The notes below the pieces were generated by a model, which worked only from the letters and a program-made list of their open reading frames with translations, made no database searches and was not told where the DNA came from. Positions 25,741 to 48,566 of a stretch of DNA of 64,000 bases are shown one piece after another. Position numbers and translations under genes: made by a program. The first letter of the stretch is position 1. Each line of letters opens with the position of its first letter. Location: IMG/VR virus record IMGVR_UViG_3300008261_000001, positions 124,001 through 188,000 of that record. One strand, 5' to 3'.

Positions 25741-25902
25741 TAGATTATTTATACTCCAAGATAGCGGATAGGTTAACCCTTAACCCAACCCCTGTCTTGG
25801 AGTAATCAAGATGAGAACAGCATCGGAAGTATTAAGAAGCCTTGAGGCTCGTATCGCTCGTTTAGAGGGTCGCACAGCTTCTTCAAAGAGAAGTGCAAGC
25901 CT
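25725..25902 (+). repeat. Direct repeat copy 1 (portal 3' end + promoter + UTR hairpin + leader codons)
   Basis: Near-identical to 26380-26557. Confidence 0.92.
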
Positions 25903-26293
25903 TACCCCCCACCTTCGTAAAGTTTCTTCGATGATGAAATTAAACTTCAAAGTGTACACAGATGACTATGACCTTTCAGAGGATGATAGGGATATGCTCC
26001 TTGATTCCGCTGTTAAGCACCTAAGTAAAGTATTCGGTGGGAGGGTAAGTATTGATGGTGGTAGTTATGGAGAGTTTCATCTGTGCAGTATGGGTGTGAC
26101 TCTAAAAGAGGCAGGGGAGATTATGAGTCTTGTGGAAAGAAAAGATGTTGGTCATCTCACCATACCCGTAGGAATGGGAGCCTCCCCCGTTTACGCACAA
26201 GACTTCTATCTAAGTGATGTTCGTGGGAAAACTATTGCTGAGGGAGATGATCTGATTGAGTATCTTACTAATGCAGGTGTGATGATCAACTAA
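25811..26293 (+). CDS. MRTASEVL-leader cargo protein 1
   Basis: Shared 31-aa leader; GGAG RBS. Confidence 0.85.
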   Translation: MRTASEVLRSLEARIARLEGRTASSKRSASLTPHLRKVSSMMKLNFKVYTDDYDLSEDDRDMLLDSAVKHLSKVFGGRVSIDGGSYGEFHLCSMGVTLKEAGEIMSLVERKDVGHLTIPVGMGASPVYAQDFYLSDVRGKTIAEGDDLIEYLTNAGVMIN

Positions 26294-26379
26294 GCCTTAG
26301 TGCTAAGTTTATTAGTGGTTTTGACTCAATAAACCCTTTATGAACCAACACCCCTAGATTTATCGCCCATAATGAACCC

Positions 26380-26557
26380 TGGCGGTCGGTTCTAATAGAT
26401 TATTTATACTCCAAGATAGCGGATAGGTTAACCCTTAACCCAACCCCTGTCTTGGAGTAATCAAGATGAGAACAGCATCAGAAGTCTTAAGAAGCCTTGA
26501 AGCTCGTATTGCCCGTTTAGAGGGTCGCACAGCTTCTTCAAAGAGAAGTGCAAGCCT
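26380..26557 (+). repeat. Direct repeat copy 2
   Basis: Near-identical to 25725-25902. Confidence 0.92.
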
Positions 26558-26963
26558 CACCGCCCCCCATCGTAAATCTGCCTCTCATAACGATATGGAC
26601 TATAAAGTTTGGACATATGATTTGATGTTCACTCTTTATCAAGAAGGCAGCATCCTTTCAGATGACGAACTGGAAAAAATGCTCAGAGCGAGTGTTAATG
26701 ATCTAACAAAGATATTTGACGAAAAAGTATATATTGAAGATTATATGGATGGGAGACTTTCATGCGGTATTTCAAATTTGGATCTAGAATCCGTCCATCG
26801 GATTATGAAATATGTGGATAGATTTGCTGTAGGTCCTTACACCATAGAAACAAGACGGGGATCAGGTGTTTACGCAAATGGCTTTGTGCTGTTGGACGAC
26901 AACTCCGGTCGCCGCGTGGCGGAGGGGGACGAACTGATGGATTTGCTTGAGAGGTGGGCGTAA
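26466..26963 (+). CDS. MRTASEVL-leader cargo protein 2 (distant paralog of cargo 1)
   Basis: Identical leader; cargo aligns weakly with 25811 (VGHLTI/VGPYTI, IAEGDDL/VAEGDEL). Confidence 0.85.
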   Translation: MRTASEVLRSLEARIARLEGRTASSKRSASLTAPHRKSASHNDMDYKVWTYDLMFTLYQEGSILSDDELEKMLRASVNDLTKIFDEKVYIEDYMDGRLSCGISNLDLESVHRIMKYVDRFAVGPYTIETRRGSGVYANGFVLLDDNSGRRVAEGDELMDLLERWA

Positions 26964-27035
26964 ATAGCCAATCAATAAACCCTTTATGAACCAACACCCC
27001 TAGATATAACTATCCAATATCTAGGGGTGTTGTTT

Positions 27036-27647
27036 ATGAGTCAGCACGAAAAGGATATGGGCTTATTGCCCATAATGAACCCTTTGTTCAACCTGCGTGA
27101 GATATGTAAGCAGATGGTGTTGCTAGAAGACCATCTGAACAATCCGCGTAAGCGTTGTCCCGACTGCATCTCAAAGCACTTCATCACAATAGAGGCTTTC
27201 TTTGAGGAAGCTATCTCATTGGATAAGGATTTGAAGTACAGCAAGCTCCTAGACGGCAAGGCTCAGATAATGAGGGACTTGCAGGGGTTGTGGTTGAAAT
27301 TCAAGGATACGGATAAAGAGGACAGGGGTTATGCCTTAGTAGCTCAGTTCTTGAGGCGACTGCGTAAGGACATACTGCCCATGTCGTTTGATGTAAGGAA
27401 GATGGCGTGTTTATCCGTTTCTTGTCCTCATCGGAAGCGTGTTGCTACCTTGACCCAAACGGAAAAAGAGGAGCGTGAGGTGGAGTCTCTAATCAAGACC
27501 TCGCCTAAGAAGAAGCCCCCTCGTAAGGATAAGATGAGGCGTAGGGTGGATGTTGAGGATAAAGATTTGGGTGGGAATAAGACCGACCCAGACCTCAAGA
27601 AAGCCTCTCTTATTCAGCGTGTGGTTGATCGCTATTTATCCCATTAA
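27036..27647 (+). CDS. Hypothetical protein with Cys/His cluster and basic tail
   Basis: LREICKQMVLLEDHL..RCPDCISKH; AATA-N5-TTTAT upstream. Confidence 0.7.
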   Translation: MSQHEKDMGLLPIMNPLFNLREICKQMVLLEDHLNNPRKRCPDCISKHFITIEAFFEEAISLDKDLKYSKLLDGKAQIMRDLQGLWLKFKDTDKEDRGYALVAQFLRRLRKDILPMSFDVRKMACLSVSCPHRKRVATLTQTEKEEREVESLIKTSPKKKPPRKDKMRRRVDVEDKDLGGNKTDPDLKKASLIQRVVDRYLSH

Positions 27648-27665
27648 ACCTAAGGTTGTATCAGT

Positions 27666-30600
27666 ATGAATGTCTTTTCCTTATTGCGTGAAATAGAGGC
27701 TGTGGGCGAAAGGATTGAATCGCTCTCTAGGAGGGTGGGTTTAAATGTTCGCACAAGTGCTAAAAAGAAAAAGGATACCCCTCTCTCTGAACAAGCGAAA
27801 TCGAACTTAAAAGACAACACCTACAAGGATGTAGACACAAAAAAGGACATATCCTTTGGGACTGCTTTAAAGAAAGAGCACCCAAAGGCGGTCAAGGACT
27901 ACAAAAAGGAGTTGTCCAAAATAAAGGGAACGAAGAAGCCCCTAAAGAACTCAGAGTACAGATCGGGTGGTCAGTTTTCAGCCGATGTAAGAGTAGACCT
28001 TGAGGGGGCGTTCTCAAACGCGAGTGTAAGGGTGGATATTGAGAGCTTATCAATACCACAAGAAATGGGTATGAGAGCCGTTATAAGTGTTGTGGTTAAT
28101 GTGGCGACCGATATAGACGATGGCTATGAGTATGAGGAAAAGGAAAAAGGTGCTAGGAAACCTAAACAAAAGGGTTTGGATAAACAAAAGGGTTTGGATA
28201 AACAACAAGTCTTACCCAAAGACAAAAAGGCTCGTGTCAAAAAGATAAAAGATAAACTCGACGAGGTTTTACCCACACAGATAGATCTCCCCAACGGAGA
28301 AACCCTACCCGTTAATACGGAGGCTTTATCCAATATGACTACTGAGCGTCTAGAGGAGACACAAAAGACTCTAGACGCTCGTGCTGAGGAAAGGCAAGAA
28401 ACAGACTCCGAGTCTAAGGCTGATGAGAAGTCTTTATCCGAGCAGATAGAAAAGAAGATTTATTCGTCTAAGCTAAAGACAAGGGAAGAGCCAAGTGAGC
28501 TAGAGTCCGCGTTGAATCGGACAATAGATAAAATGTTCGAGGACGACGAGGGGTTTTTGAGTTCGGAGAAGGTACGGACTCAAAAGAGCGAGCTAAAGGG
28601 TCTTACGAGGTCGATTCAGTCGATGTCGCTCGAAGAGGCTGAGGAGGTGGCTAAGGCGTATGAGAAGCAAGGGGAGAGCCTCATAAACTCTTTTACGGGC
28701 AAAGACAGCGACTATGAGGGATTGAGTGAGCTTTACAAAGCCACACAAGAGGTTTTAAAAGCTGGGATACCTCAGAACCCTTTAGAGGATGAGGATATAG
28801 AGCATAAGCTCTTGGCGGAAGCCTCATTGGAAAAGTTATCCAAAGTCTCCAAACTCGATCAGCTAGAGACACTTAATGAAAAGCTAAAGGATAAGTCCCT
28901 TTCCAAAGAGGAAGCAAAAACCATTAAAGAGGAGATATCCAATATTGAGAAGGGAGCTAAAGCGTTATTGGAGGCAGAGGGCATTGATCCTTCAGCATAT
29001 AAAGCCTTCGTAGCGTACAGAAAGAATCCAGAAAAAGGGTTCAAAGATTTCGCCTCTGCTTTGGAAAAGTCCAAGTGGATGTCGGATAACTTAGAAGATA
29101 TACAAGGCGAGGTAGATCAAAAGAAGTCGGCTATAACCAAGCCCTACAGAGAGCAAGTTGGTAAGTATCTGGCGGCAAAAGCGATGGAGGAGGGATTTAT
29201 TCGAGATCCCATGTACGGAGTAAAGAGTATTGGAAAGACCGATATGAACGACTCTGATGTGGTAGCTCATCGCAGGCAGGTTAGGATAAACCAAGCTAGG
29301 CGATATAAGCAGATGAGTTCTGAAATACGCGATCTAGCCGTCCTAGAAACACAAGACTTATCCAATGACAACGCAAAGCTGATTGCAGAACTCGAAGAGA
29401 AACAATCTAAGGGTGAGGATGTATCCCAAGCCTTACAACAAGCGAGGGAGAAGCAGAATCAATATCAAGACACTCTTGCGGGCTTAAATACAGCAAGGCT
29501 TTTATTGGGTGAAAAGCCTATAGATGGTTTTCAAGAGGTCGATGAGAACCTCTTGAACTTAGCCAAGAGCGTAGACGACAATAATCTTTTAGAGGCGGTC
29601 TCCGTTTTAGGTTCACCCACAGGTGGGGGTAAAGACAGAGAACAAACACGGGAGGCTGTTAAGGGTGCCTTATCCGAAATGTCCTTAGATCGTTTTGGGC
29701 AGATCGTGGGAGATCAGTACGAGGATATGCTCGATGTCCTTAAACCCACTTACTGCCCATCTACACCAAAAAACGAAGCGGCAGGTTTAGCGGATAAACA
29801 TCTTACGGAGGGGCAGAAGTGTCCAGAGCCTTTAGACCCACGACTACATGACCTTATGCGTAGGTACATCACTGACTCGTATGCAGACACACAAAGCATA
29901 CGGAGTGAAGATAGGGGTGGTTTCGATGAAGGTAGATCGAAACAAGTATCCACTCAACAGCGTAAGGAGTTCAAAGAGCTTTGGGATAAAAGCAAAGAGG
30001 AAGTCCTAAAAGCCATAACCATGAGCGAGGACGACCCCGCATATGATGAAGACGCTGTGGTGAGTACCCTAGAGCTATTTGGGTTGGAACTGAGGATGAG
30101 GAACTATGAAACGCTGATGGTGGACGGCAAGAAGATAGTCGGTCATGAAGCCATCATGAAGTACATCCGCAAGGTTCAAGAAATGGATAAGAAGGAGCGA
30201 GAGAAAAAGGTAAAGGAGTTGGCGAAGCAGTTTGAAGATTTCTTAAAGCAGAATGAACCTGAGGCTTCTGAAACACCCCCTCGTACAGCAAATATATTTA
30301 ATAAATCTTTTATAGACCCACGCTTAAATATCGCAGGAGACTTTCTTATGAAGAAAAGTGCGACAACCTATGTGGACTATCAAGCTCTAGCCTCAACATT
30401 TGAGGTTGGGATGAGTGTATTTACGCATAGTGGTGGCGATCCTGCTCGATCAGGTGTTGTGGTTGCCGTATTTCCAGCTATTGGAATGGTCGATGTACAG
30501 TTTCCACACGGAAGCACTCGTCTCCCAGTAGAGGATCTTGTCATTGACCATACTAAAGAAATAGCACCACTACCGGATAGTTTGATATCCGTACCTGGCG

Positions 30601-30854
30601 GTGTGGGTACACAGCCTGTGTCTTTAGGTGTAAAGCGTGTAGCTTCAGCCTATATGGAAAAGACAGCACTTTATTGGTGGGCTAAAGATAGGGTGTACAG
30701 AAAATCGAAATCCGAGGTTAAACCATCGTGTCCTAAGTGCAAAGACATGATGAAGCCCTCGGTGTATAAGAGGCGAAATGGAAAGAGCGACAGACTTTTA
30801 GTTTGTACCTCTTGTGTTTTCGTCATAAAGACCACCGACATCGTGGAAGGATAA
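27666..30854 (+). CDS. Large charged helical protein with C-terminal Zn ribbon; probable head protein
   Basis: 1062-aa ORF; CPKC..CTSC at C-terminus; internal in-frame start at 30348. Confidence 0.75.
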   Translation: MNVFSLLREIEAVGERIESLSRRVGLNVRTSAKKKKDTPLSEQAKSNLKDNTYKDVDTKKDISFGTALKKEHPKAVKDYKKELSKIKGTKKPLKNSEYRSGGQFSADVRVDLEGAFSNASVRVDIESLSIPQEMGMRAVISVVVNVATDIDDGYEYEEKEKGARKPKQKGLDKQKGLDKQQVLPKDKKARVKKIKDKLDEVLPTQIDLPNGETLPVNTEALSNMTTERLEETQKTLDARAEERQETDSESKADEKSLSEQIEKKIYSSKLKTREEPSELESALNRTIDKMFEDDEGFLSSEKVRTQKSELKGLTRSIQSMSLEEAEEVAKAYEKQGESLINSFTGKDSDYEGLSELYKATQEVLKAGIPQNPLEDEDIEHKLLAEASLEKLSKVSKLDQLETLNEKLKDKSLSKEEAKTIKEEISNIEKGAKALLEAEGIDPSAYKAFVAYRKNPEKGFKDFASALEKSKWMSDNLEDIQGEVDQKKSAITKPYREQVGKYLAAKAMEEGFIRDPMYGVKSIGKTDMNDSDVVAHRRQVRINQARRYKQMSSEIRDLAVLETQDLSNDNAKLIAELEEKQSKGEDVSQALQQAREKQNQYQDTLAGLNTARLLLGEKPIDGFQEVDENLLNLAKSVDDNNLLEAVSVLGSPTGGGKDREQTREAVKGALSEMSLDRFGQIVGDQYEDMLDVLKPTYCPSTPKNEAAGLADKHLTEGQKCPEPLDPRLHDLMRRYITDSYADTQSIRSEDRGGFDEGRSKQVSTQQRKEFKELWDKSKEEVLKAITMSEDDPAYDEDAVVSTLELFGLELRMRNYETLMVDGKKIVGHEAIMKYIRKVQEMDKKEREKKVKELAKQFEDFLKQNEPEASETPPRTANIFNKSFIDPRLNIAGDFLMKKSATTYVDYQALASTFEVGMSVFTHSGGDPARSGVVVAVFPAIGMVDVQFPHGSTRLPVEDLVIDHTKEIAPLPDSLISVPGGVGTQPVSLGVKRVASAYMEKTALYWWAKDRVYRKSKSEVKPSCPKCKDMMKPSVYKRRNGKSDRLLVCTSCVFVIKTTDIVEG

Positions 30855-30858: not shown

Positions 30859-32244
30859 ATGGCTTTTTTAAGATATGCTAAGGCTAATGTGGTCAATCCT
30901 CAACTCAACTTTAAGGGTTGGGATAAGGTGCGTGTGGCGAGTGGTTCTAAATCTTCATTGGGTGGTGGATTGGTTCAGAAAGCCCAAGACATCTTGGGTG
31001 AGCCTTGCACACCTGAGAGGTTTTTACTTACCCACTCAACCATAGTCTGTTCAGTAGATGCGGTAACCGTTCCTAACTCCAAGACGGGTTCTATCGTAGA
31101 GCAAGGCTTAAAGATTAACCGCAAGTACGCTAATTGGCGAGTCACATCTGAAACGGATAAGTTCATAAATAACAACCTAGATTGTTGGTCTAGGGAGGTT
31201 ATTATGAAGTCCTACAAGACTTTCATTGGGGCTCAGAACTTTTTGGAGCATATACAGGTTGAAGAACTCTCTAAGGGTCGGATTATTGATGCTGTTCTTC
31301 GAGATGTTGGTGAATCTTTATATGTGGACATCTTGGTAGCCACTGACAGAAAACACACCGACTTGGTTAATCAAATAATCAAGGGCGAAATGAACGCCAT
31401 GAGCATGGGTTGTTCTGTAGAGGCGACCATATGCACCAAGTGCGGTCATGTGGCTGCGGATGAGACTGAGTTCTGTCCCCATGTGAAGTACGAAAAGGGA
31501 AATGTCTTTTATGACGAACAGGGTAATAAGCACCGAGTTGCAGAACTCTGTGGACATGAGGACATGGGCGAGACAGGTGGCGTGACTTTTATTGAGGCAT
31601 CTTGGGTGGCAACCCCTGCCTTTAAGGGTGCAGTCACTCGTAATATCCTTGAGCTTCCTCAGACTAAACAAGCCTCAGAAGCTATCCTAAATCAAATCCC
31701 ATCGGCTTGGTTATCCAAAGTGGCTGGTCCGTTTGATGACGAGGAAGAAGATGCAGGAGAGGAAGCTCCCGCTGAACCCCCCAAGTCACTTATGCAACAG
31801 CTAGAGGATGTGTATCAGACAGCTATCCTCGATAGGTTGCGTGTAAAGCTAGAGAACGAAATCAAAGAGGAACAGGCTAAGTTAGTCTTAAATCCTCCTA
31901 TTGATAAGTCCACGGCTGAACAGAACGACACCGTCATTAAAGAAGGGTCTCGTACTCTAAAGAAATCCTACTTAAAGGCATTAGAGTTAAGTATTAAGAC
32001 TGCCTCTAGCATAGACGAGGCAGTCTTGAACTTATCTTTGGTTAATAGCCATTATGGGGTAAAGATACCTGCTCACATTTATAAGCTCGCCCAAAAGCTA
32101 GGGTCGGCTTCTAACTTTAAGAGCGTAGACTCTTACCTCAAGCAAGCCAATGTTTTACATGGCTCAAATCTTTCTGAGTCGGATAAGGTAAAACTTATCC
32201 GATTTGCAAAGCTCCTCTCCCTCCACCAATCGGGCAGAAAATAA
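30859..32244 (+). CDS. Prohead (capsid maturation) protease with Zn-finger insert
   Basis: NFLEH, GRIIDA, MSMGCSV..ICTKCG..CPH, FIEASWVATPAF; upstream of scaffold and capsid. Confidence 0.75.
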   Translation: MAFLRYAKANVVNPQLNFKGWDKVRVASGSKSSLGGGLVQKAQDILGEPCTPERFLLTHSTIVCSVDAVTVPNSKTGSIVEQGLKINRKYANWRVTSETDKFINNNLDCWSREVIMKSYKTFIGAQNFLEHIQVEELSKGRIIDAVLRDVGESLYVDILVATDRKHTDLVNQIIKGEMNAMSMGCSVEATICTKCGHVAADETEFCPHVKYEKGNVFYDEQGNKHRVAELCGHEDMGETGGVTFIEASWVATPAFKGAVTRNILELPQTKQASEAILNQIPSAWLSKVAGPFDDEEEDAGEEAPAEPPKSLMQQLEDVYQTAILDRLRVKLENEIKEEQAKLVLNPPIDKSTAEQNDTVIKEGSRTLKKSYLKALELSIKTASSIDEAVLNLSLVNSHYGVKIPAHIYKLAQKLGSASNFKSVDSYLKQANVLHGSNLSESDKVKLIRFAKLLSLHQSGRK

Positions 32245-32272: not shown

Positions 32273-33757
32273 ATGTCAAGGTATGGTCGTAGATTGAATC
32301 GTAGGGCTACCTCCGCTATGCCCGGTACTGATAACCTCGGTTGGGACAGCTTCGGTCACCCCGCCTCTTCCGCACAGCCCGAAGTCGATGCTTATGGTTT
32401 CGACGCTGAGTTTGGTGAGGGTGTTCGTAAGGGCCCTTATCGCTCTGGTCCTGCTCCCGCCTCTTATGGTTGGACACCTGATCATCCTGCCGCTAAGGAT
32501 ACTTTAGTTGAGGACTTTGCCTTAACTGAGGATCTTCGTAATGAGAACCTCAAGCTCGCTATGGAGCGTAAGGCGGCTAAGTGTATCCGTATTGCTGAGT
32601 CTCGTCTTGGCAAGAAGGCTTCTCCCCGTGAGATCGAGGAACTAGCCCTTCGTTTTATGGATCTCCCCAATCACACCATCAACGCTCGCGTTGCTTCTCT
32701 CTCTCGTAGGGCAGACAATGCAGTGCAAGTGAACACTGGCTATGATCAGGGTCTCGACTTCACAGGTCCTTTCAACGCAGAGGACGAGCTAGTCGCTGAC
32801 GATATGTGGGCAGACGACCTTGAGGCTGATGAGCTTGAGGCACATGGCATCTCTGACGAGTACGACTTCGACATGGACGGCATGGTATCGAGTGAGGAGT
32901 GGGGTGGCTCTGAGAGCGTGTTCGACTCTATGGACAGCGATGCAGACGGTTTCCTCGACCATGAGGAGATGTCGATGGGTCTTGGTGAGTCTTTTGCGGA
33001 AGACATGATGGGTTCACGCATGGCTTCAAGGCGTGTTCGTGCTCAAGAGACCACCGCTGCTGATTTACTTGCTGAGGAGCTTGCAATGCTCAAGGCGGCT
33101 AACGCTCGCCTCGCTCGTCAAGTCCGTAAGTTAGCGGACAACACCACACAGCAGAACACAGGCTACACTGTCGAAGACTTCTCTGAGAAGATTGAGACCA
33201 AGCCTGAGTTTGAAGAGGGTATGGGCGAGCCTACCCCTCGCCTTGCAAGTCGTAAGCCTAGCCTCAATCGTCTTGCTACTGCTCTTTCCGAGTACATGGC
33301 AGATCAAAATGATCCTCGTGCCTTCTATAGCAAGCCCTCTGAGAAGAAGGCTGACTTCATGGCTGACGAGATGGCTGAACTCATGGCTGAACTTGAGGAG
33401 ACCTCGGGTGAGGATGTCATGGGCTTAGACTCAAGCGAGGCTCAAGCGTCTGCAATGGATCCCAAGCTCGCCCGCATTTTCCAAGCCGCTGACGAGGCTG
33501 AGGAAGAGGCTGAGGAAGAGGCTCCTGAGGAAGAGGCTGAAGAGGAAGAGGTCAAGATGACCGATGACGAGGAGGAGGAAGAAGAGAAGCCTGCTCCTAA
33601 GAAGTCTGAGGCTAAGAAGGCTTCCTATCGTCCTAAGGCACCTGCTCGCCAAGCGTCTGTGAAGACCCTCGGCAACATCAGTCGTGAGGCATCAGCTTCC
33701 GATGAGCTTTCCAAGCTCTGGGAGACTGCTCCTGATGTGAGCAAGTTCTTTAACTGA
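32273..33757 (+). CDS. Capsid scaffolding protein (acidic, EF-hand pair)
   Basis: Very acidic with coiled coils; between protease and capsid genes; start at 32273 after AAGGA. Confidence 0.7.
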   Translation: MSRYGRRLNRRATSAMPGTDNLGWDSFGHPASSAQPEVDAYGFDAEFGEGVRKGPYRSGPAPASYGWTPDHPAAKDTLVEDFALTEDLRNENLKLAMERKAAKCIRIAESRLGKKASPREIEELALRFMDLPNHTINARVASLSRRADNAVQVNTGYDQGLDFTGPFNAEDELVADDMWADDLEADELEAHGISDEYDFDMDGMVSSEEWGGSESVFDSMDSDADGFLDHEEMSMGLGESFAEDMMGSRMASRRVRAQETTAADLLAEELAMLKAANARLARQVRKLADNTTQQNTGYTVEDFSEKIETKPEFEEGMGEPTPRLASRKPSLNRLATALSEYMADQNDPRAFYSKPSEKKADFMADEMAELMAELEETSGEDVMGLDSSEAQASAMDPKLARIFQAADEAEEEAEEEAPEEEAEEEEVKMTDDEEEEEEKPAPKKSEAKKASYRPKAPARQASVKTLGNISREASASDELSKLWETAPDVSKFFN

Positions 33758-33903
33758 TAGTTTCCAATAGGGTGTAATAGTTCTTTTATACCCTAACGCA
33801 TAATACACAAACCTAACTTGGGGCGGTTCATGGTGAACCACCTCTTAAATACAACACACTACTTCCTTGAAAACAGGGAGTACGAGAACATAGGAAAATA
33901 ACT

Positions 33904-34509
33904 ATGGCTCTACTTGGACAAGCTAGTGGTGGTTTTACTGAGTCAAGCTCGGCTCTCCGTATCCTCCATGTTGGTGTTCGTAACACCATCGGGCAGCTTA
34001 CGGCAGACAGCTTTACACAGGTGAACCCCCCCAATCCTAACGCTGTTGCAGGTGCGTCTGCCACACAAGCTCCCGGTCTTTTGACTAGCGTGTTTGGTGT
34101 ACTCAGCGGCTCTATCGCCTTCACCCGTGGTGACGAGGGTGCTTCCTTCCACGGTGGTCCTACAGCAGAGGCTGGTCGTGCTCATGCGGAGCGTGTACTA
34201 GGCGTTTATATCAATAACGCTGTTGGTAACGCTTTTGAGAATCAGCCTGGCGTAGCCTCAAACCGTGGTCCTTATGTATCCGCTCAAGGTGCATATGGCA
34301 ACCGTCTTTACGAGACTCGTGACATTGACGGTGGTGGTGCTCTCACCACCGCTTATGCACCTGGCGTAGCTCTCGTAGCTTCCGTTAACGGATACCTCAC
34401 CACCTCGGTGGATGCGGCTCACGATCACACGGACGACACCCTCATCGGCATTGTAACCATCGCTCCCGACTCCAACGATGATGAGTTGGTTTACGATCAG
34501 CGTATCTAA
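33904..34509 (+). CDS. Capsid decoration/cement protein
   Basis: G/A/T-rich 201 aa directly before MCP; same high-expression codon style. Confidence 0.6.
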   Translation: MALLGQASGGFTESSSALRILHVGVRNTIGQLTADSFTQVNPPNPNAVAGASATQAPGLLTSVFGVLSGSIAFTRGDEGASFHGGPTAEAGRAHAERVLGVYINNAVGNAFENQPGVASNRGPYVSAQGAYGNRLYETRDIDGGGALTTAYAPGVALVASVNGYLTTSVDAAHDHTDDTLIGIVTIAPDSNDDELVYDQRI

Positions 34510-34530: not shown

Positions 34531-35409
34531 ATGAGCAATACCGTAGATAATGCAGTCAAGCAGAAGATCATTAGCGACTACATCAAGACCCCTCAAGGTC
34601 GTGCTAAGTTAGCCGCTTCGATGACTCAGCCTTTGCGTCTCCGCAGAGACTACACCTCTGTCGGTCGCAAGACTTTCCTTGTTGAGCAGTTGCCCGATGG
34701 TGCTCTGCCCATCTATGACAAGGATCCCGATGTGACCGCGTTCGTGGTTGGTGAAGAGGGTCAGAACATCCTCGCTATCACCAAGCCCCGCCGTGTGATC
34801 TTCCCCTTGTTCGAGATTGCCTCGAACCCTGAGATCCCCTTAACTCAGATTAAGGAGAGGCGTTTCGACCTCATCGAAAGGGCTCAGGATCTCGCAAGGG
34901 CTCAGATCCAAGCCGCTGAGGATGAGCGTGTATTCGCTATCCTTGACGCTGTGGCAACACAGGGCTTCGACAGCCTCCCTGGTCAGACCAACGCTGACAT
35001 CCCTGTCATCGCTCCCCTCAATGGTGCGGTGCTTGCGGATGCGTTCTCGCTCATCGAGCGTCACGACCTTCGCGTAGCTCGCGTGTTCATGAACGCTCGT
35101 GACTATGCAGACATCAGAAAGTTCGGTCGTGACATCCTCGACATCGAGAGCCAAGCGGCACTCTTAAAGACAGGTCTACAGGCTACCCTTTGGGGCTCTC
35201 AGATCATCACCTCACGCCTCGTGCCTGTTGGTACGGTGTATGTGTGCTGTGAGCCTGAGATGTTCGGTCGTATCCCTGTTCGTACAGAGCTTACCGTTCT
35301 CTCAGCGGACGATCCTAAGGCTCGTACCATCGGCTTCTCCGTGTTCGAGAACCTCGGTATCGGTGCATACAACCCCCGTGGTCTTGCCCGTCTCACCGTG
35401 ACCCGCTAA
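34531..35409 (+). CDS. Major capsid protein (HK97 fold, encapsulin-like size)
   Basis: GRAKLAASMTQPLR, FEIASNPEI, IQAAEDERVF, VFMNARDYADIRK, ENLGIGAYNPRG; strong RBS; terminator follows. Confidence 0.85.
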   Translation: MSNTVDNAVKQKIISDYIKTPQGRAKLAASMTQPLRLRRDYTSVGRKTFLVEQLPDGALPIYDKDPDVTAFVVGEEGQNILAITKPRRVIFPLFEIASNPEIPLTQIKERRFDLIERAQDLARAQIQAAEDERVFAILDAVATQGFDSLPGQTNADIPVIAPLNGAVLADAFSLIERHDLRVARVFMNARDYADIRKFGRDILDIESQAALLKTGLQATLWGSQIITSRLVPVGTVYVCCEPEMFGRIPVRTELTVLSADDPKARTIGFSVFENLGIGAYNPRGLARLTVTR

Positions 35410-35524: not shown

Positions 35525-35592
35525 AATAGGTTATTTATACTCCGAGATAGGGGATAGGTTTTAACCCTTAACCCAACCCCTATCACGGAGTA
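35525..35592 (+). promoter_or_regulatory. AATA-N5-TTTAT promoter-like motif plus RBS-occluding hairpin (third copy of cassette UTR)
   Basis: Homologous to 25739-25804; TACTCCGAGATAGGGG pairs with CCCCTATCACGGAGTA. Confidence 0.75.
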
Positions 35593-36261
35593 ATGAAGAT
35601 GATAAGATCAGCCAGTCTATCGCAAGAAGATCAAAGAGTGATTCAACTCTTTACCTATAGAGAAAAAGGTCAATCCAAAAGCATGAACTCTACGGGGGAT
35701 CGTTTAGATGGACCAGGACCAGAACTAAAGGGGGTTGCATTTTGGGAAAACGACCAAATTTGGTTTGTGGAAAAGGGATCTAGAACAGGACAACAAATCC
35801 ACAAATTGATTAAAAAGTTGAACCCTTATCCAGAGGTTTTGGGTGGTTATAAAAAGGAAGCACCCATGTTGGTTATGAGAAGATCAGCAAGCGAAGTATT
35901 AAGAAGTCTAGAGCAGAGAGTCGCATCCCTTGAGGCACAAGCGGCTCGCCTTGTTCTGCCTAGCAGGGCTAGGATGAAGGGCAAGAGGGTCGGTAAGAAA
36001 GACTTATCCGATTTGCTTATGGAGTTTATCAGTTCTGAGTACATGAGCGGGGGAGACGAGTTCTCTAGCTTTAACTTAGATGGCGATAAGTTCTCATTTC
36101 AGATCATGACAGACGATGGGGACGAGACTTTTTGGGCGGGCAAAATCATCGACAGAGGTGTTGCTCAGTCCGCACTCCTTAGCCAAGACAGCTATGCCCT
36201 AGAGGACGCTGTGATGGTTAAGCGTGATAGAAACCGAGACAGCGGTTTCGGTTATCGCTGA
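35593..36261 (+). CDS. Two-module cargo protein with internal MRRSASEVL leader
   Basis: N-terminal MKMIRSAS; internal MRRSASEVLRSLEQRVASLE at 35875. Confidence 0.8.
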   Translation: MKMIRSASLSQEDQRVIQLFTYREKGQSKSMNSTGDRLDGPGPELKGVAFWENDQIWFVEKGSRTGQQIHKLIKKLNPYPEVLGGYKKEAPMLVMRRSASEVLRSLEQRVASLEAQAARLVLPSRARMKGKRVGKKDLSDLLMEFISSEYMSGGDEFSSFNLDGDKFSFQIMTDDGDETFWAGKIIDRGVAQSALLSQDSYALEDAVMVKRDRNRDSGFGYR

Positions 36262-36290: not shown

Positions 36291-36686
36291 ATGAATATGA
36301 GAACTGCAAGCGAAGTATTAAGAAGTCTAGAGGCTCGTATTGCTCGCCTCGAAAGTCGCACCGCAGGTGCGACCAATAAGACTGCTAATGAGATAGCCAC
36401 TACTATCCTTCAACAGCTTGGTGGTAGTCGCAAGTTGCAGATGATGATTGGTCTCAAGCAAGTCATTAGTGATCCTCTAGGTGTCACGCTAGTGTTCCCT
36501 TTGCCTTCACATGAGGGTGCTGTAAATCGTGTCCGTATCACTCTTAATGGGCTTGATCTTTATGATATGGATTTTATCCGTACTAGAGGTACTAGCCAAA
36601 AGGTGGTTAAAGAGTTTGATAATGTCTATGCAGAGGACTTGAAGAGTATGTTTGAGAAAGGGACAGGTCTTTACATTAGGTTCTAA
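36291..36686 (+). CDS. MRTASEVL-leader cargo protein (IAxTILQQLGG...TGLY domain)
   Basis: Leader followed by a domain I recall as a common stand-alone phage hypothetical. Confidence 0.8.
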   Translation: MNMRTASEVLRSLEARIARLESRTAGATNKTANEIATTILQQLGGSRKLQMMIGLKQVISDPLGVTLVFPLPSHEGAVNRVRITLNGLDLYDMDFIRTRGTSQKVVKEFDNVYAEDLKSMFEKGTGLYIRF

Positions 36687-39384: not shown

Positions 39385-39449
39385 TTTTAAGGGTTCTATG
39401 AGCCTATCACTATAGACACGCACCCCCTTCTTTGAGAGAGAGGTCACAC

Positions 39450-40100
39450 ATGAGAAATCTAATGTCACGCCCAACAGCTAGACGGGTCTATATGGACGAG
39501 AGTATTGAAGCTCTGTCTCCTAATATGAGTGACAGCAAGGATTATTATGGAGACCTTACAACTGCGGAAAACCACATTTACTTCTATCAAGAGGTGACCC
39601 CCAAGACCATCATGAAGCTTGGGCTTGCCATCAAGTCCATCGAACAACAGCTTATAAACCTCGCCACCAATCTGAGCTTATCCCAAGTCCCAGCTATCCA
39701 TTTACACATAAACTCAGGTGGTGGCTGTGCCTTTAGCGGTCTTGCAGGTGCAGGACATATCCTTAACTCTCAAATCCCCGTCTTCACCTATGTAGAGGGA
39801 AATGCCGCTTCAGCCGCCACGATCATGTCGTGTGTTGGTGCGAAGCGTTTCATCACCGAACATAGCTTCATGCTTATCCACCAAGTAAGTACAGACTTCT
39901 GGGGCACCTATGAAAATCTTAAAGATGAAAAAGAGTCGATGGATGCACTCATGGATATGGTGTCTAGCATCTACTTGAAGCACACAGGACTGAAAAAGAA
40001 ACAGCTCAAGGCGTTGCTCAAGCGGGACTTATTCCTTAACGCTGAGTCTTGCCTTGAGCTGGGTCTTGTCGATGAGGTTATGAACTTCGAGAGGGTCTAG
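39450..40100 (+). CDS. clpP: ClpP-like protease subunit
   Basis: LHINSGGG, GNAASAAT, MLIHQ, RDLFLNAESCLELGLVD. Confidence 0.88.
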   Translation: MRNLMSRPTARRVYMDESIEALSPNMSDSKDYYGDLTTAENHIYFYQEVTPKTIMKLGLAIKSIEQQLINLATNLSLSQVPAIHLHINSGGGCAFSGLAGAGHILNSQIPVFTYVEGNAASAATIMSCVGAKRFITEHSFMLIHQVSTDFWGTYENLKDEKESMDALMDMVSSIYLKHTGLKKKQLKALLKRDLFLNAESCLELGLVDEVMNFERV

Positions 40101-41164: not shown

Positions 41165-41191
41165 TAATGAGGTGCTTTGAGCTTTGGGATA
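41165..41191 (-). promoter_or_regulatory. TATCCCAA-N12-CTCATTA motif
   Basis: Exact motif. Confidence 0.75.
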
Positions 41192-41196
41192 AAGAA

Positions 41197-41736
41197 ATGC
41201 CGATTTACACAGAGAAAAATGATGTGGGTCAGAGAGTCCCTTGTCCAAGAACGGAGACATACATCACTTGGGCTTGGGTCGGCAGAAATATGAAGGGTTG
41301 TGTGCGTGTAGATTTCTCTACTTTGGTGTGCGAGTTCTTAGCCGAGATCGGCTTCTCACCGCCCCACATAGCTGACTTTCAGAATTCTTATCGTGAACTC
41401 AGACGAGCGAGTTTTAGTTTCCCTTCCGATTATCCATTTACGCTACAGCTTACATGGGACATACGGGGTAGGGTCTTATCCACAAGGACTTATCCAATAG
41501 ACGAAGAAGACGAGTTTTATGAAGCTCTGAGTCCTTACTTACCGCAGGTGCGTTGTGCCTTATGGAAAAATAACAATAAGGGTGTGTGCCACTATGGAAC
41601 CTATACACACCACCTTCAAGATTGGGAGTACGACCCCAAGAGCGTTGGAGATCTGTTAGATTTCTTGTTGAGTTTTATACGGAGTGGTTACGGAATAACA
41701 CACACCCTTATCCCAAACCCTAAAGCTCTTTATTAA
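41197..41736 (+). CDS. Paralog family member 1 (IRSxY end)
   Basis: QVRCAL...LLDFLLSFIRSGY; start uncertain. Confidence 0.65.
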   Translation: MPIYTEKNDVGQRVPCPRTETYITWAWVGRNMKGCVRVDFSTLVCEFLAEIGFSPPHIADFQNSYRELRRASFSFPSDYPFTLQLTWDIRGRVLSTRTYPIDEEDEFYEALSPYLPQVRCALWKNNNKGVCHYGTYTHHLQDWEYDPKSVGDLLDFLLSFIRSGYGITHTLIPNPKALY

Positions 41737-41793
41737 GAACCACACGCCAAACACAGACGGATTAAAAAATCTTGCTCGGCAAGGAGATAAATT

Positions 41794-42294
41794 ATGTGCT
41801 ACACCGAAATCGTAACTGGAAAGAGGTTTTTCACCTATGACAGTCTCCCCCTCACCGACTTGGGGGACATCACCCCATATTTGATGGGGGCTATGGAGGA
41901 GATGGGTTTCACCTATCTAATGGATAGGTTTTCAACCGACAAAACCTCTGGGGCGAGTGTTTTTGTCCTAGAGTTTAAGAGGGACGCTATGGTGGTGAAG
42001 GTGTGGTACTCGGTCGATGGGGTTAAAGACCTCACTTGGACAGATTGTGAGCCTGAGGATTGTGTACTCAACGAGTTTTCCAAAAGCACAAAACAACAAC
42101 ACATTAGGCAATCTGTTTACTTCGAAGACTCTATACGCCCTCTCGATTACACCTATTCCATAGACCTTAGAAGGTCTAGCTACCTAGAAGACTTCGAGGG
42201 GACTTTTACAGCAGATGAGGTAATGAACCCCATCATCGAAAATATCCGTAGAGCTTATTTCCAATCTATCCCAAACTCCCGAACCCCTTATTAG
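41794..42294 (+). CDS. Paralog family member 2
   Basis: HIRQSV...IIENIRRAY; AAGGAG RBS; motif at 41709-41735. Confidence 0.75.
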   Translation: MCYTEIVTGKRFFTYDSLPLTDLGDITPYLMGAMEEMGFTYLMDRFSTDKTSGASVFVLEFKRDAMVVKVWYSVDGVKDLTWTDCEPEDCVLNEFSKSTKQQHIRQSVYFEDSIRPLDYTYSIDLRRSSYLEDFEGTFTADEVMNPIIENIRRAYFQSIPNSRTPY

Positions 42295-42334
42295 TGGGAG
42301 CAGAATGCACTACCCAATAAACAGGAGTAACATC

Positions 42335-42838
42335 ATGCAGTTCACCCACATTGTAAATGGTAAGAGAGTCGCCACCCCCTCCCAGACGGGTCGTTTGACA
42401 GATCTAAATTTAACTTATTCCGTGGGGGAGTACATCCAGAGCAACTTCACATGGAATATGGTCGATAGCCTCAACGAAGCTAAAATAACCTATATTAATA
42501 GATTTGAGGTCGAGGGGGTGAAGATGTACTGCTATGAGAGAGAGGACTGCGGTCTCGAACTAAAGGTGTGGTGGGGTGTACCTACTAATAGCGACTTGAT
42601 AGACCTCAATGGGACAGACACTTACGGTGAGGACGAACACTTCACACCAACCGACACACCTTCTCACATGAGAGCTTGTGTAAAAGTAGAAGGTAAAGCC
42701 CACTATTACAGCTTGACCCTAGATCAGATGCCCCTTCCAAACTGGAAGACTAGATGGCCTTTGAAGGTTGCTGTGGAGTGGGAGACCATCTTGAACTTTA
42801 TTCTGAGCAGTATCCGAAGCTCCTTCCCTACCCCTTAG
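42335..42838 (+). CDS. Paralog family member 3
   Basis: HMRACV...ILNFILSSIRSSF; AGGAG RBS; motif at 42267-42293. Confidence 0.75.
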   Translation: MQFTHIVNGKRVATPSQTGRLTDLNLTYSVGEYIQSNFTWNMVDSLNEAKITYINRFEVEGVKMYCYEREDCGLELKVWWGVPTNSDLIDLNGTDTYGEDEHFTPTDTPSHMRACVKVEGKAHYYSLTLDQMPLPNWKTRWPLKVAVEWETILNFILSSIRSSFPTP

Positions 42839-43376
42839 GATGGGATTTAATGTAGTCTTCGTAGGAGCTACGGATAGATAAGAGGATATAGCTAACAATA
42901 TGTCCTAGTGATGTGGCGTAGCTCCAAGCCCTCCCCGCTGTCGGTACGCTGAAACCAAATGGATAAGTCTCGGAGGGGTAGCCAACACACACCCTAAGGT
43001 GATGTGGGTGCTGATGGCCCACTTGGTTTAGTTTCTTATCCTCTGGAAACACATCTACACTATCGAGAGATGTCACCTTTCCATTTTCATCTGGCGTAGC
43101 CCACCATGCCGAGAACTTGATTTGAGGTGTGCAATCTAAACGCTCGAAGTCTATCCTTTCGATTTTTAATCCAGCTCTAGGTGCGTTGTACAAGTCGTGT
43201 TTTTCGACCAGCACAAAACCTGCTTCTTTCATAACCTCTTCAAGTACGCTACTGAAATGAAGCGGGTTAGCGAACTTAGAACTAGTCGTATGGACTTCGT
43301 CTAGGTTTGTCATGGTATTTTTGGAAAACTCCGTTGGAGTTCTCTTTGACTGTTTGATTTCTGTCCATCTATCCAT
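42828..43376 (-). CDS. Paralog family member 4 (convergent)
   Basis: HLRVCV...IVSYILLSIRSSY. Confidence 0.75.
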   Translation of the reverse strand: MDRWTEIKQSKRTPTEFSKNTMTNLDEVHTTSSKFANPLHFSSVLEEVMKEAGFVLVEKHDLYNAPRAGLKIERIDFERLDCTPQIKFSAWWATPDENGKVTSLDSVDVFPEDKKLNQVGHQHPHHLRVCVGYPSETYPFGFSVPTAGRAWSYATSLGHIVSYILLSIRSSYEDYIKSHPKG

Positions 43377-45146: not shown

Positions 45147-45300
45147 GTCACGCCTTGTGGGACAGCTAGAGCGTAATGAGACACAAGCCCAACAGATTTT
45201 ATCCGAAGCTCGTAAGAAAGCTGGTGTGACTGACGATATGCCGTGGCAGATTCAAGAGGATGGGAAGATCTTAGCTATTCTGCCCAAGAGTGAGAGTTAA
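45019..45300 (+). CDS. Small coiled-coil protein
   Basis: AGGAG RBS; Q/L heptads. Confidence 0.7.
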   Translation: MSETNQAPQQVGQLTEEELQAIAQLRNQATQLLGLLGQLEIRKSRLVGQLERNETQAQQILSEARKKAGVTDDMPWQIQEDGKILAILPKSES

Positions 45301-45349
45301 ATAATCCATTTATGAGACAACCCTTTAGTACACAGCTAAAGGGGGTTGT

Positions 45350-46744
45350 ATGTCTCACGGATGGTATGACTCAAGGTCGGCTTATCCATTACCGCCAACG
45401 AATACCTCAGCGACTTCACCCTTTTTGAAGGGTGAAATGGATGTGAGGTGGGACAACCCTGCTCTCTTACATGGGAACGAGGGTTGGATACTTCGTGGGG
45501 TCAATATCTATCGGTCAGGCGACTCAGATAGAGGACCATATCGAAGGGTCAATATGACACCTGTCGGTGGGACTTTTTATCGTGACCGCGTGGACTCGTG
45601 GCTTGTCTATGAAGAACCCATACTTGCAGAGAGTTGGATAAGTAAGGGGGATCAGCCCGAGGATCCTTATCGTTTTAGGACTGAGTATCCAATAGCGAGA
45701 ATAGGTAGCCCCTCTGAGGCATCGTTTTCGGGTAGGGATGTGATAGTGACGATAGATGGGGAAGAAGTCCCTGTACTGAGAACGATGGGGCAGGTAAGAG
45801 AAGTTATCCTATTGTACACAGGGGTTTCCCTTGCCAAGCCTTTAGAGATGAGGGCGGTTAGTTATCCTCCACCGATAACTGAGGACTCGGTGGTGAAGAT
45901 CACCTATGTGGCTTATGACCCTTCATTTAGGTTGAGGGTAGGGACGGATAAGAGAGATTTCTATCGTGTGGCGAGTGTTGCGGAGGATCCAAAGACGGGA
46001 GAGTTGCATGAGACTCCTTTGGAGTATTGTCAGCCTTTTTCGGATAGAGAAGTAGAGCGTGTGGATTACATATGGCGAGAGGGCATGAGGAGGAACAATT
46101 GGATACTCGATCAAGGTGGTGAGCGGGTGAAGTTATTTACCAAGCGTGTGGTGGGTATCCCTTGTATTTGTGGAGCGTTTAATCGAGAGACGCTGATATT
46201 TGCAAAGCAACCTGACTCGTTGTGTTCAATCTGTTTTGGTACGGGCATACGAGGAGGTTATGACGGACCATACGACATAATCATAGGACCAGATGAGGGG
46301 GATAAGAGGGTAAGCCAAGATGTGAGGGGTAGGCGTAAGGAACATTCGTATGAGGTGTGGATAGGTCCTAGTCCGATAGTCTCTCAGAGGGACTTCATTG
46401 TGAAGATGAATAACGACCGCTATTCAATAGGCGGTGTTCGTTATCCATCTAACAGGGGGAATGTGCTTCAACAGCACTTCAACATCGCTTATTTAGACTC
46501 GCAGGACATACGCTATAAGGTTCCGATAGATGGGGTTCCTGTTTCATGGCCGAAGACAACCTTTGGATACTTGCCGTATAGAGACACCTATACGGCTCGT
46601 GGGGACTCTAACTTTCCAATCACACCTGATACGAGTTATCCGATGGACTCGGACAGACCCGACATACCATCAGCGTTGGAACAGAGGGGTCGTACAGCGA
46701 CATGGGAGAACCATCACGCTAATGGTGGTAAGAAGGGTTATTAA
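45350..46744 (+). CDS. Probable neck/head-closure protein with Zn finger
   Basis: FN3-like GVNIYRS start; CxC..CxxCFGTG..GGY; AATA-N5-TTTAT upstream. Confidence 0.55.
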   Translation: MSHGWYDSRSAYPLPPTNTSATSPFLKGEMDVRWDNPALLHGNEGWILRGVNIYRSGDSDRGPYRRVNMTPVGGTFYRDRVDSWLVYEEPILAESWISKGDQPEDPYRFRTEYPIARIGSPSEASFSGRDVIVTIDGEEVPVLRTMGQVREVILLYTGVSLAKPLEMRAVSYPPPITEDSVVKITYVAYDPSFRLRVGTDKRDFYRVASVAEDPKTGELHETPLEYCQPFSDREVERVDYIWREGMRRNNWILDQGGERVKLFTKRVVGIPCICGAFNRETLIFAKQPDSLCSICFGTGIRGGYDGPYDIIIGPDEGDKRVSQDVRGRRKEHSYEVWIGPSPIVSQRDFIVKMNNDRYSIGGVRYPSNRGNVLQQHFNIAYLDSQDIRYKVPIDGVPVSWPKTTFGYLPYRDTYTARGDSNFPITPDTSYPMDSDRPDIPSALEQRGRTATWENHHANGGKKGY

Positions 46745-46747
46745 AAT

Positions 46748-47272
46748 ATGGACGAGCGAGATCCTAGAAAGAAGTTCAACCTTAAAAAGTACAAGGTGGG
46801 TCGGACGACTTTTAAGTCTCCTGTACTAAGGAACACTAAGATTACGAAGCGTATGTTAGAAATCTTAGGTGAAGAGATGGTGAGGGGTGTCCGAGAGGAG
46901 GCATCTAGGGCATCAGGTTTGGGTACGGGTATTCCAAGCACGACTGAGTTTTTGGAAAGTTTTGGTTATGAGATAGTGAGTGGGGACTCAATAAGGATAA
47001 CTTCGGATTGGAAATGGGTCTCTGCGTACTTAAAGGCGAGGGCTCCTTTTAAGATGACTTGGCTTACTCAGCAGAAGGGAGCACCTAAGGTGATACCTTT
47101 AAGGGATAAGAACGGTGACATAGTGTTTAGGACAACGCCTCTGAGGTTGGCTGATGCGTGGGTTCACCCTGCCATTTACAAGTATAACTTCATAGATAAG
47201 GGTATTAAGCGTGGATTGACAAGGGCTACCACAAGGATACTTTTCGAACTCGGTTCGGATGTATTTAGGTGA
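46748..47272 (+). CDS. Probable neck/tail-completion protein
   Basis: Basic; WLTQ..VIPL..VFRT..WVHPAI..FIDKGI. Confidence 0.5.
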   Translation: MDERDPRKKFNLKKYKVGRTTFKSPVLRNTKITKRMLEILGEEMVRGVREEASRASGLGTGIPSTTEFLESFGYEIVSGDSIRITSDWKWVSAYLKARAPFKMTWLTQQKGAPKVIPLRDKNGDIVFRTTPLRLADAWVHPAIYKYNFIDKGIKRGLTRATTRILFELGSDVFR

Positions 47273-47324
47273 TTTGGTTTCGAGAATCCCATAAGGGGTT
47301 TGTACCTATCGAAAGGATGAACTC

Positions 47325-47612
47325 ATGAGTTGGCACTACGAGATGATTTTAGTTAAGAAAGCGGTTGAAGACTACGAGGAGGACGAGGGTCGTCTTGTGG
47401 AGATTTACCTAGAGGACGATGGATCTGTGTTGGGTTTTGCTTTTGCACACCTTGTGACGATTGGGGACTTGGAGCTTGCACATCAAGATGTGTTGAAACA
47501 AGGTGGGAAGCTCAACACATGGTTTTACGACAGAGGTAAGTTTTCATGGGAGAATGGAAAGTTGGTGTATGAGCCGAACGAGGATGGGATAGTGGTAATC
47601 AAGAGAACTTGA
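47325..47612 (+). CDS. Hypothetical protein
   Basis: AAGGA RBS. Confidence 0.65.
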   Translation: MSWHYEMILVKKAVEDYEEDEGRLVEIYLEDDGSVLGFAFAHLVTIGDLELAHQDVLKQGGKLNTWFYDRGKFSWENGKLVYEPNEDGIVVIKRT

Positions 47613-47711
47613 TAATCATCAATGCCCTTTAAACAATCACCTTGACTTATTTTAGACTGCTCCCTAGCGTATGGGTTATCCGTTAACTCAGAGGTGCTAA
47701 GGATGTAGCAG

Positions 47712-47960
47712 ATGAGAGATGAAGTAAAGATAGGTGAGATTGTGGATATTGTTTTACGCCCCGCCTCCCAAGAGCATGGGGCAACAATCGAAGAACACGA
47801 CGAGTGGCTTGACGGTGGCGAGGATTGGAAAGATTTCTCATTAGTTCACCAAGAGGTGAACTCAGTGAACATAATCGACTTGAAGGGTAAGGCGTTCAAG
47901 TTTACGGGTACTTATTTACTGAGCCTTGTGGGGGATAGCGTTTACCTTCGGGCTAAATAG
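47712..47960 (+). CDS. Hypothetical protein
   Basis: AAGGA RBS. Confidence 0.6.
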   Translation: MRDEVKIGEIVDIVLRPASQEHGATIEEHDEWLDGGEDWKDFSLVHQEVNSVNIIDLKGKAFKFTGTYLLSLVGDSVYLRAK

Positions 47961-48005
47961 TTCATTTATACCCATGAAGGGGTCAGGCACCCATTCATGG
48001 AGTAA

Positions 48006-48566
48006 ATGGATATGAGAACTGCAGGTGAAGTATTAAGAAGCCTAGAGTACAGAATAGCTCGTTTAGAGCGTCAGTCTGCTCGTGTTCGCCCACCAGCTCC
48101 ACAGCGTACTCCATCCACTAGGGGTCGTATGAAAGATCTGTCTGTACACTCAGACCTTCTAACTGCTTTGCAGTTGATCTATCATTACTCTGAAGCTGAC
48201 AGATTGGCTTTCACAAGTGAGTTGTCGAGTTATAAGGGTGTTTTTGAGGTTGGTGGGTGGCCAGGAACTCATTACGACTCAGCCACTAATAGTATTGTTT
48301 TCTACCTTACCCTAGAGGGCAATCCTAACACAATTCACCGTTTGGCTGATAAATATGGCATAAATATCATAGATGTTTCCATAAAGTTAGACGGACAGAA
48401 GAACGATAAGACCGTCTATGAGTTGGGTTTGAGCTTAGACTCGGCTAAATACAAGGGTGTTTGGAAGGAGTTTATGGGCAACGCTTCTATGCAGAACACC
48501 CTTCGTGAGCTTCCTGAAGCTGTAAGACGCTCGGAGCGTTTGTTCTTTGGTATCGACTTTAAGTAA
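48006..48566 (+). CDS. MRTAGEVL-leader cargo protein
   Basis: MDMRTAGEVLRSLEYRIARLERQSA leader; AATA-N5-TTTAT at 47956. Confidence 0.85.
   Translation: MDMRTAGEVLRSLEYRIARLERQSARVRPPAPQRTPSTRGRMKDLSVHSDLLTALQLIYHYSEADRLAFTSELSSYKGVFEVGGWPGTHYDSATNSIVFYLTLEGNPNTIHRLADKYGINIIDVSIKLDGQKNDKTVYELGLSLDSAKYKGVWKEFMGNASMQNTLRELPEAVRRSERLFFGIDFK

Follow-up and report, generated by a model that had tools for sequence, protein, structure and literature searches.

A short helical leader common to unrelated small proteins of a giant phage lineage: a possible tag for loading into the capsid

The 64,000-nt stretch of DNA described here (the window) comprises positions 124001-188000 of the 290-kb contig IMGVR_UViG_3300008261_000001 and has the gene content of the late structural module in a giant tailed phage related to phage G. 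It contains five copies of a short helical leader, four at the N-terminus of small proteins (genes A, B, D and E) and one within an open reading frame (ORF C), each followed by a cargo domain. Genes A and B lie 3′ of the portal gene, C and D lie 3′ of the capsid gene and E is located between the neck and tail genes (Table 1). All five copies are present where the original prediction had placed them. A hidden Markov model (HMM) of the leader, 30 residues in length, searched against the six-frame translation of the window identifies only these five, with E values from 1e-14 to 2e-19, and the next best match has an E > 1. A second profile, constructed from 140 database examples, recovers the identical five copies. 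Two further, looser versions that had been suggested at 27666 and, on the minus strand, at 60497 score at most 1.6 bits with the main leader profile, are missed by a profile of a divergent leader type from a distant relative, L055, and were therefore rejected. In L055, a tandem array of five paralogous genes (11070-16300; ~300-358 aa) encodes proteins that each carry the divergent form …IRSLE-x-RIARLE-[KR]-EAG.

The leader is 22-24 residues long and nearly invariant, with the consensus M-R-(R)-[TS]-A-S-E-[VI]-[LI]-R-[SND]-L-E-x-R-[IV]-A-R-L-E-[RGK]-[QRK]-[TAS]-A. In an alignment of 135 tagged proteins, residues R2, L11, R14 and E19 are invariant and A4, S5, E6, E12, A16, R17 and L18 are at least 90% conserved; beyond the leader, the same 135 proteins have a mean column identity of 5%. 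The sequence forms two heptads in which L8, L11, I15 and L18 constitute a narrow hydrophobic a/d stripe, with the other face charged. As originally noted, the leader is conserved also as DNA, with the core GAAGTNTTAAGAAGNCTNGAG present five times in the window versus 0.01 occurrences expected. The codon differences among the copies are nevertheless 68 synonymous versus 45 non-synonymous, and serine is encoded by TCG, TCA or AGC. As synonymous changes prevail and the serine codons are unrelated, the leader is under selection at the peptide level.

When a leader profile was searched against 1.84 billion cluster representatives and the cargo catalogued, as the original prediction had envisaged, 412 clusters were obtained at E ≤ 1e-3, with the leader N-terminal in 140 of the 148 best scorable matches. 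The proteins with an N-terminal leader are small, with a median length of 136 aa. The tag is specific to one phage lineage, as all of the tag-bearing IMG/VR contigs that could be placed belong to a single clade with capsid proteins 94-100% identical to that of the window. The genomes of 185,579 bacterial and archaeal species lack it, and no match at E ≤ 1 was obtained when 50,697 GenBank phage records, a set that includes T4, phage G, Tunturi_5 and the uncultured 485-kb phage LR745208, were searched with the leader by tblastn. Inspection of the head regions of the cultured phages, phage G and Tunturi_5, similarly revealed no tag. The leader is covered by no Pfam, NCBIfam or PHROG family and, as nothing relevant emerged from literature searches with its motif letters or on comparable concepts in huge phages, the tag appears to be undescribed so far. 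A scan of ~120 kb of the parent contig revealed 16 or more tagged genes, with both strands represented. The copies had been thought to be confined to the structural region, but this was too narrow a view since at least 11 more are present in the parent contig, several far from the head module and some beside DNA ligase and homing endonuclease genes.

At least four unrelated cargos follow the leader in the window, as had been claimed. Those of A and B are homologues with 36% identity (E 1e-18), and the cargos of C, D and E resemble neither each other nor A and B. The same holds on the larger scale of the database search. BLAST places 135 cargos in 111 groups and a second set of 78 cargos in 62 groups, and essentially none has a Pfam or PHROG annotation. 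The proposal of a portable tag on unrelated cargo is therefore borne out, by the 412 clusters, by these 111 groups and by the existence of both tagged and untagged members of the D family. That all cargos have a single fold was considered, but the number of groups and the range of lengths (40-389 aa) speak against this at the sequence level, the structure model being for D only. Basic, DNA-binding cargo, as in T4, was also considered and rejected, as the cargos have mixed isoelectric points (median 6.0). The E cargo is extreme in its rarity, with only 3 homologues among 5.8 billion proteins.

Portability of the kind expected of a T4-type capsid targeting sequence (CTS) is found in the D cargo family. 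The match of D to its PHROG family begins at residue 33, and the same cargo is present as a stand-alone ORF of ~95 aa in 52 GenBank phages of many kinds. In LR745208, the homologue has no leader and its start coincides exactly with the start of the D cargo. Among 91 database homologues of D, the tagged forms are 121-144 aa and the untagged forms 97-115 aa in length, with 61-72% identity, and in a third, two-domain form a second cargo is inserted between the leader and the D-domain. The family thus documents gain and loss of the tag in nature. In the structure model of D (predicted local distance difference test score (pLDDT) 88), the leader helix continues into the first helix of an alpha/beta domain and confidence dips at the junction. 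A structure search with this model returned uncharacterised viral proteins only, and nothing from the PDB.

Cargo turnover is apparent also at a fixed location. Five related phages have an array of tagged genes within 4 kb 3′ of the capsid gene, and the 12 tagged genes in these arrays have mutually unrelated cargos. This conserved position lends indirect support to a link between the tagged genes and the head genes. Some proteins have a tag-domain-tag-domain organization. In ORF C, the leader is internal. The true start of this ORF is at 35599, behind a promoter-like box and 5′-untranslated region (UTR) of the A/B type, and the MIRSAS sequence at the N-terminus is a degenerate leader stub; the cluster representative P0012 has the same architecture. 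There are three proteins, namely ORF C (stub at 35599-35616), P0057 and P0281, in which a stub M(I/R)R[ST]AS is followed by an unrelated domain and then by a complete internal leader. The R[TS]AS motif is present also at the 3′-end of the leader and at a domain junction in P0297, and may have arisen as a scar of recombination or serve as a site for processing or for a basophilic kinase.

The tagged genes have an upstream cassette in common. An AATA-N5-TTTAT motif had been reported before each site, and this is refined here to AATAG-N3-ATTTATA, which occurs exactly four times in the window versus 0.01 expected, in each case 57-74 nt 5′ of a gene start, namely those of A, B and E and the true one of ORF C. 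A predicted hairpin directly follows this box, within 25741-25810, 26396-26465, 35527-35598 and 47958-48011 for A, B, ORF C and E, respectively. In its stem, a CUCC segment is paired with the GGAG of the ribosome binding site (RBS). The RBS sequence GGAGTAA, described originally as preceding every copy, is present before A, B, D, E and ORF C, but the internal copy in C has no GGAGTAA. The same box-hairpin layout is found in L010, L039, L012, L009 and other relatives, and before most tagged genes. In 55 distinct upstream regions of related contigs, the stem sequences vary and the pairing is kept (mean z -2.3), with full pairing of the RBS in 23 of 46. Identity between A and B is 100% in box and hairpin, 90-93% in the leader and ~55% in the cargo, and the cassette is therefore either homogenised or very strongly constrained. 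A shorter box, TTTATACYC, occurs seven times in the window versus 0.95 expected, and is located also before the decoration/capsid operon (TTTATACCC at 33785) and before a small gene ahead of the portal gene. That the box is common to the tagged genes and the decoration/capsid operon suggests a common, probably late, promoter, which lends indirect support to late co-expression of the tagged genes with the head genes. The T4 genes e and soc have a late promoter inside such a hairpin so that only the late transcripts are translated. By analogy, with the hairpins here translation could be limited to those transcripts whose start lies inside the stem.

The setting of the tagged genes is that of a conventional head and tail module (Table 1). 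LR745208 is the nearest GenBank relative, with a capsid protein 90% identical to that of the window; the identity is 47% with the capsid protein of Tunturi_5 and 39% with gp27 of Bacillus phage G. The other head proteins are far more diverged from LR745208, with identities of 67% for the portal, 64% for the terminase, 52% for the decoration protein, 44% for the protease and, at its ends only, 38% for the scaffold; the capsid protein may be unusually constrained or may have been exchanged. Only the C-terminal ~170 aa of the 1062-aa protein encoded between the portal and protease genes are conserved in LR745208, where they form a separate 193-aa ORF, and this could be an internal or ejection protein. 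In LR745208, which has no tag, two genes in the portal-protease interval (13116-13751 and 15210-15875) have an N-terminal domain of ~45 aa in common that differs from the leader, possibly an analogous but unrelated module. A cluster of three or four diverged paralogous genes, of ~170-190 aa and 21-23% identity (best pair E 1.5e-11), is located at 41167-43376; one is on the opposite strand and all encode a SIRS-like C-terminal motif.

Table 1. Tagged genes, their 5′-cassettes and neighbouring genes in the window (MFE, minimum free energy)
Feature	Position	Strand	Remarks
Large terminase	21910-23766		PHROG profile
Portal protein	24055-25740	+	phrog_16240, E 6e-35; genes A and B directly 3′
5′-cassette of A	25739-25810	+	Box, then hairpin with GGAG RBS in 3′ arm; MFE -27.1 kcal/mol
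Tagged gene A, 160 aa	25811-26293	+	Leader 25811-25882; cargo paralogous to B cargo
5′-cassette of B	26394-26465	+	Like that of A
Tagged gene B, 165 aa	26466-26963	+	Leader 26466-26537
1062-aa protein, K- and E-rich	27666-30854		Between portal and protease
Head maturation protease, 461 aa	30859-32244	+	phrog_18299, E 5.5e-17
Acidic scaffold-like protein, 494 aa	32273-33757	+	Between protease and decoration protein
Decoration protein	33904-34509	+	Between scaffold and capsid protein
Major capsid protein	34531-35409	+	PHROG profile
5′-cassette of ORF C	35525-35598	+	Box and hairpin, directly 3′ of capsid gene; MFE -29.3 kcal/mol
ORF C, 220 aa	35599-36261	+	Stub MIRSAS, ~90-aa N-domain, internal leader 35875-35949, cargo
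Tagged gene D, 129 aa	36297-36686	+	Leader 36297-36368; cargo is phrog_9437
ClpP-related protease	39432-40100	+	NCBIfam NF045542
Neck and tail genes, including 1605-aa sheath	45350-57757		Match annotated genes of Tunturiibacter phage Tunturi_5
5′-cassette of E	47956-48011	+	Box and hairpin of different sequence; MFE -23.3 kcal/mol
Tagged gene E, 184 aa	48012-48566	+	Leader 48012-48083; cargo near-orphan

The observation of the tag is solid and broader than originally seen, and a plausible mechanism, which we infer in part from the T4 precedent, is that the leader acts in the manner of a T4 CTS, as a helix that docks in the prohead and brings variable proteins into it, and is probably removed by a head protease. 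We assign this reading a probability of about 0.5. The tagged genes would be transcribed late, from the box that they have in common with the capsid operon, and the helix would bind a conserved prohead component, with the acidic scaffold core the most likely partner. The cargo would thereby be enclosed in the capsid, the tag would probably be cut off or degraded by the head protease after one or more of the invariant Glu residues, and the cargo would stay with the DNA and be delivered at the next infection. Purely by analogy, the cargo might have anti-defence roles. More tentatively, this freshwater clade of giant phages may operate an address label, one helix that loads dozens of exchanged effectors per genome into the capsid for injection, with label, promoter and hairpin forming a recombination-prone cassette that recruits new genes as injected cargo, amounting to more than 400 families clade-wide.

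Several features of the sequences are consistent with processing of the leader. Glu is invariant at leader positions 6, 12 and 19; A4-S5-E6 is present in ~130 of 140 sequences and [SND]-L-E12 occurs too. The residues at P3 relative to E6, E12 and E19 are A, S/N/D and R, respectively, and A-S-E and S-L-E fit A/S/G-x-E, as possible cleavage motifs. These Glu residues appear to be at least as good candidates for cleavage as the flanking R-x-A motifs favoured by the original prediction. In six tagged proteins, the second half of the leader (the half-motif R[IV]A[RSH]LE[KR]) is found again at junctions between domains (chance expectation ~0.02, a rough estimate), and the tag-domain-tag-domain proteins are likewise compatible with processing. 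The 461-aa head maturation protease is a candidate for the enzyme responsible, and has a conserved KLE motif (31834-31860) just 3′ of the catalytic part that is also consistent with processing. Pfam, NCBIfam and PDB sequence searches with this protease had no match, hhalign gave a probability of 0.4% for relatedness to T4 gp21, and the AlphaFold2 (AF2) model (pLDDT 51) was too poor for a fold search. In the relative L020, the protease gene (2986-5598) has an intein-like insert of ~400 aa located exactly at an invariant SMG|CS motif (~31399 in the window), which points to this motif as a candidate active site; Hint/intein Pfam domains are present in P0239. The ClpP-related protease encoded at 39432-40100, which matches the NCBIfam model 'head maturation protease, ClpP-related' with 100.8 bits, below the cut-off of 120, could equally well be the leader-processing enzyme.

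For the docking partner, a heptad helix in the scaffold (33068-33142) resembles the leader, is present in four tag-bearing relatives and is missing in the tag-less LR745208, making it a weak candidate. Strict co-occurrence of this helix, as receptor, with the tag was rejected; the correlation is not clean because the helix is present in L060 and L063, and the 14-21 kb examined there showed no tag. The capsid protein is an unlikely receptor, as LR745208 retains a 90% identical capsid protein without the tag and it is the protease and scaffold that differ. The scaffold contains a pair of EF-hand-like loops at 32870-33004 (Pfam EF-hand_5, E 2e-4, below cut-off) that are conserved in L030 and L061, and may be calcium-binding.

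A number of observations weigh against loading into the prohead followed by proteolytic removal of the tag. The leader does not conform to the T4 cleavage rule, (L/I)-x-E, the adjacent protease resisted classification by Pfam, AF2 and hhalign, the mixed isoelectric points of the cargos differ from those of the basic T4 internal proteins, and both the scaffold helix in L060 and L063 and the 90% identical capsid protein of LR745208 occur where no tag was found in the DNA examined. The genetic evidence, namely the late-type box and the vicinity of head, neck and tail genes, with E between the latter two, would be the same if the helix anchored variable proteins elsewhere on the virion, on the capsid exterior, neck or tail, with the cargo displayed and the tag uncleaved. 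A two-heptad helix with an R14/E19 pair would suit a coiled-coil bundle in a decoration or fibre protein, and with docking as the only function internal copies of the tag would work as well as N-terminal ones. Nevertheless, we consider such display unlikely, given that Pfam detects no Ig-like, lectin-like or other display-type domain in the cargos, that these are very small with very fast turnover, and that a virion displaying 16 or more different proteins would be unusual; processing is also the better explanation for the half-motif at domain junctions.

The tagged proteins are known here from their genes and not from a virion proteome or structure, and, of the 16 or more tagged genes in the parent contig, at least 11 lie outside the head module, many near replication or recombination genes. 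Both points weigh further against encapsidation and are in keeping with a tag that acts in the infected cell, gathering proteins in a hub or condensate or marking them for an unfoldase or protease of the phage, for which the ClpP-related protease that it encodes is a candidate, so that tagged proteins have a common localisation or lifetime. This is nonetheless improbable in our assessment. Degrons are usually short and loosely conserved, unlike this nearly invariant amphipathic helix of 22 residues, most tagged genes in the contig carry the late-type box and hairpin seen in the head module, and the post-capsid array is conserved. That the leader is a functionless passenger, the first codons of a mobile expression cassette (promoter, 5′-hairpin and RBS) spread by recombination or gene conversion, would account for the gradient of identity between A and B, from cassette through leader to cargo, for the recurrence of the cassette across the contig and for the three proteins that keep only a stub MRR[ST]AS before a domain, and mobile promoter/stem-loop cassettes of T4-type phages provide a precedent (PMC2839356). 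It is the weakest of the alternatives, and very improbable, since the peptide survives synonymous change, with different codons for the same residue, and occurs internally with no upstream cassette; it is, moreover, conserved in 140 clusters with differing UTR hairpin sequences and has invariant polar positions not expected of a passenger peptide.

If the tag is a capsid-loading signal, every tagged protein becomes a candidate injected effector and the list of such effectors can be read directly from sequence. There would then be more than 400 orphan families, the majority of which would probably act in host takeover or counter-defence, a large and untapped source of anti-defence functions, and the internal-protein strategy of T4 would have arisen independently, and on a much larger scale, in the phage-G lineage. 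The tag would be a phage counterpart of effector-secretion signals and could be used, ready-made, to package foreign proteins in HK97-fold capsids. Even with some other function, a conserved receptor is implied by the presence of a near-invariant peptide of 22 residues on unrelated phage proteins that number in the hundreds.

Several known systems bear comparison. Short amphipathic helices with a flexible linker direct diverse cargo into protein shells as microcompartment encapsulation peptides and encapsulin cargo-loading peptides, and the shells of encapsulins, as those of phage capsids, have the HK97 fold. These systems are, however, cellular and their peptides bind the shell protein and are uncleaved, whereas here the setting is a tailed phage and the capsid protein is an unlikely receptor; a scan of 20 window proteins found no match to a Pfam shell family, and the neighbours are portal, terminase, capsid and sheath genes. 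The Dar proteins of phage P1 depend on a hierarchy of protein-protein dependencies and are not known to have a single common leader. As described in PMC12810830, these anti-restriction proteins are built into the capsid while it is being formed and are co-injected. The proposed likeness is in having accessory anti-defence proteins in the head, and no Dar homology was detected here.

The giant phages phiKZ, 201phi2-1 and SPN3US have head and ejection proteins with propeptides that are cut after Glu at S/A/G-X-E (PMC10052503), with propeptides of 20 and 24 residues in SPN3US gp225 and gp45, respectively (PMC10052503). Here too many head proteins are encoded across the genome of a giant phage, and A-S-E and S-L-E in the leader fit A/S/G-x-E. 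The phiKZ and SPN3US propeptides are, however, alike only in the cleavage motif, whereas here the whole helix is nearly invariant, and the phage lineage is different, with a phage-G-like capsid protein. In PeSL cassettes of T4-type phages, a promoter and stem-loop flank hypervariable ORFs and are thought to mediate their shuffling (PMC2839356, PMC4122927). Here a short conserved, putatively regulatory cassette is similarly located next to variable ORFs, but the stem-loop holds the RBS, the box is common with late structural operons and the cassette runs into the coding sequence of the leader.

The closest parallel is with the internal proteins of T4, which are otherwise unrelated but have a common N-terminal CTS of 10-19 residues that binds the scaffold core and is removed by gp21 after Glu, their cargos being diverse anti-restriction proteins (PMC9026906, PMC3012670). 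As with the CTS of IPI, IPII, IPIII and Alt, the leader is a short N-terminal peptide common to unrelated small proteins of one phage, the cargos vary between relatives and the variable loci have a conserved upstream regulatory sequence. The leader has, however, no sequence similarity to the CTS, as judged by the tblastn searches of phage records that included T4, it is longer, at 22-24 residues, with a clear two-heptad helix, and the protease here is not demonstrably of the gp21 family. T4 has ~4 tagged genes per genome versus at least 16 here and more than 400 cargo clusters. As far as genetics can show, the leader therefore resembles the T4 CTS, and is set apart from it by its sequence, length and helix, by the phage lineage and unclassified protease with which it occurs, and by the scale on which it is used.

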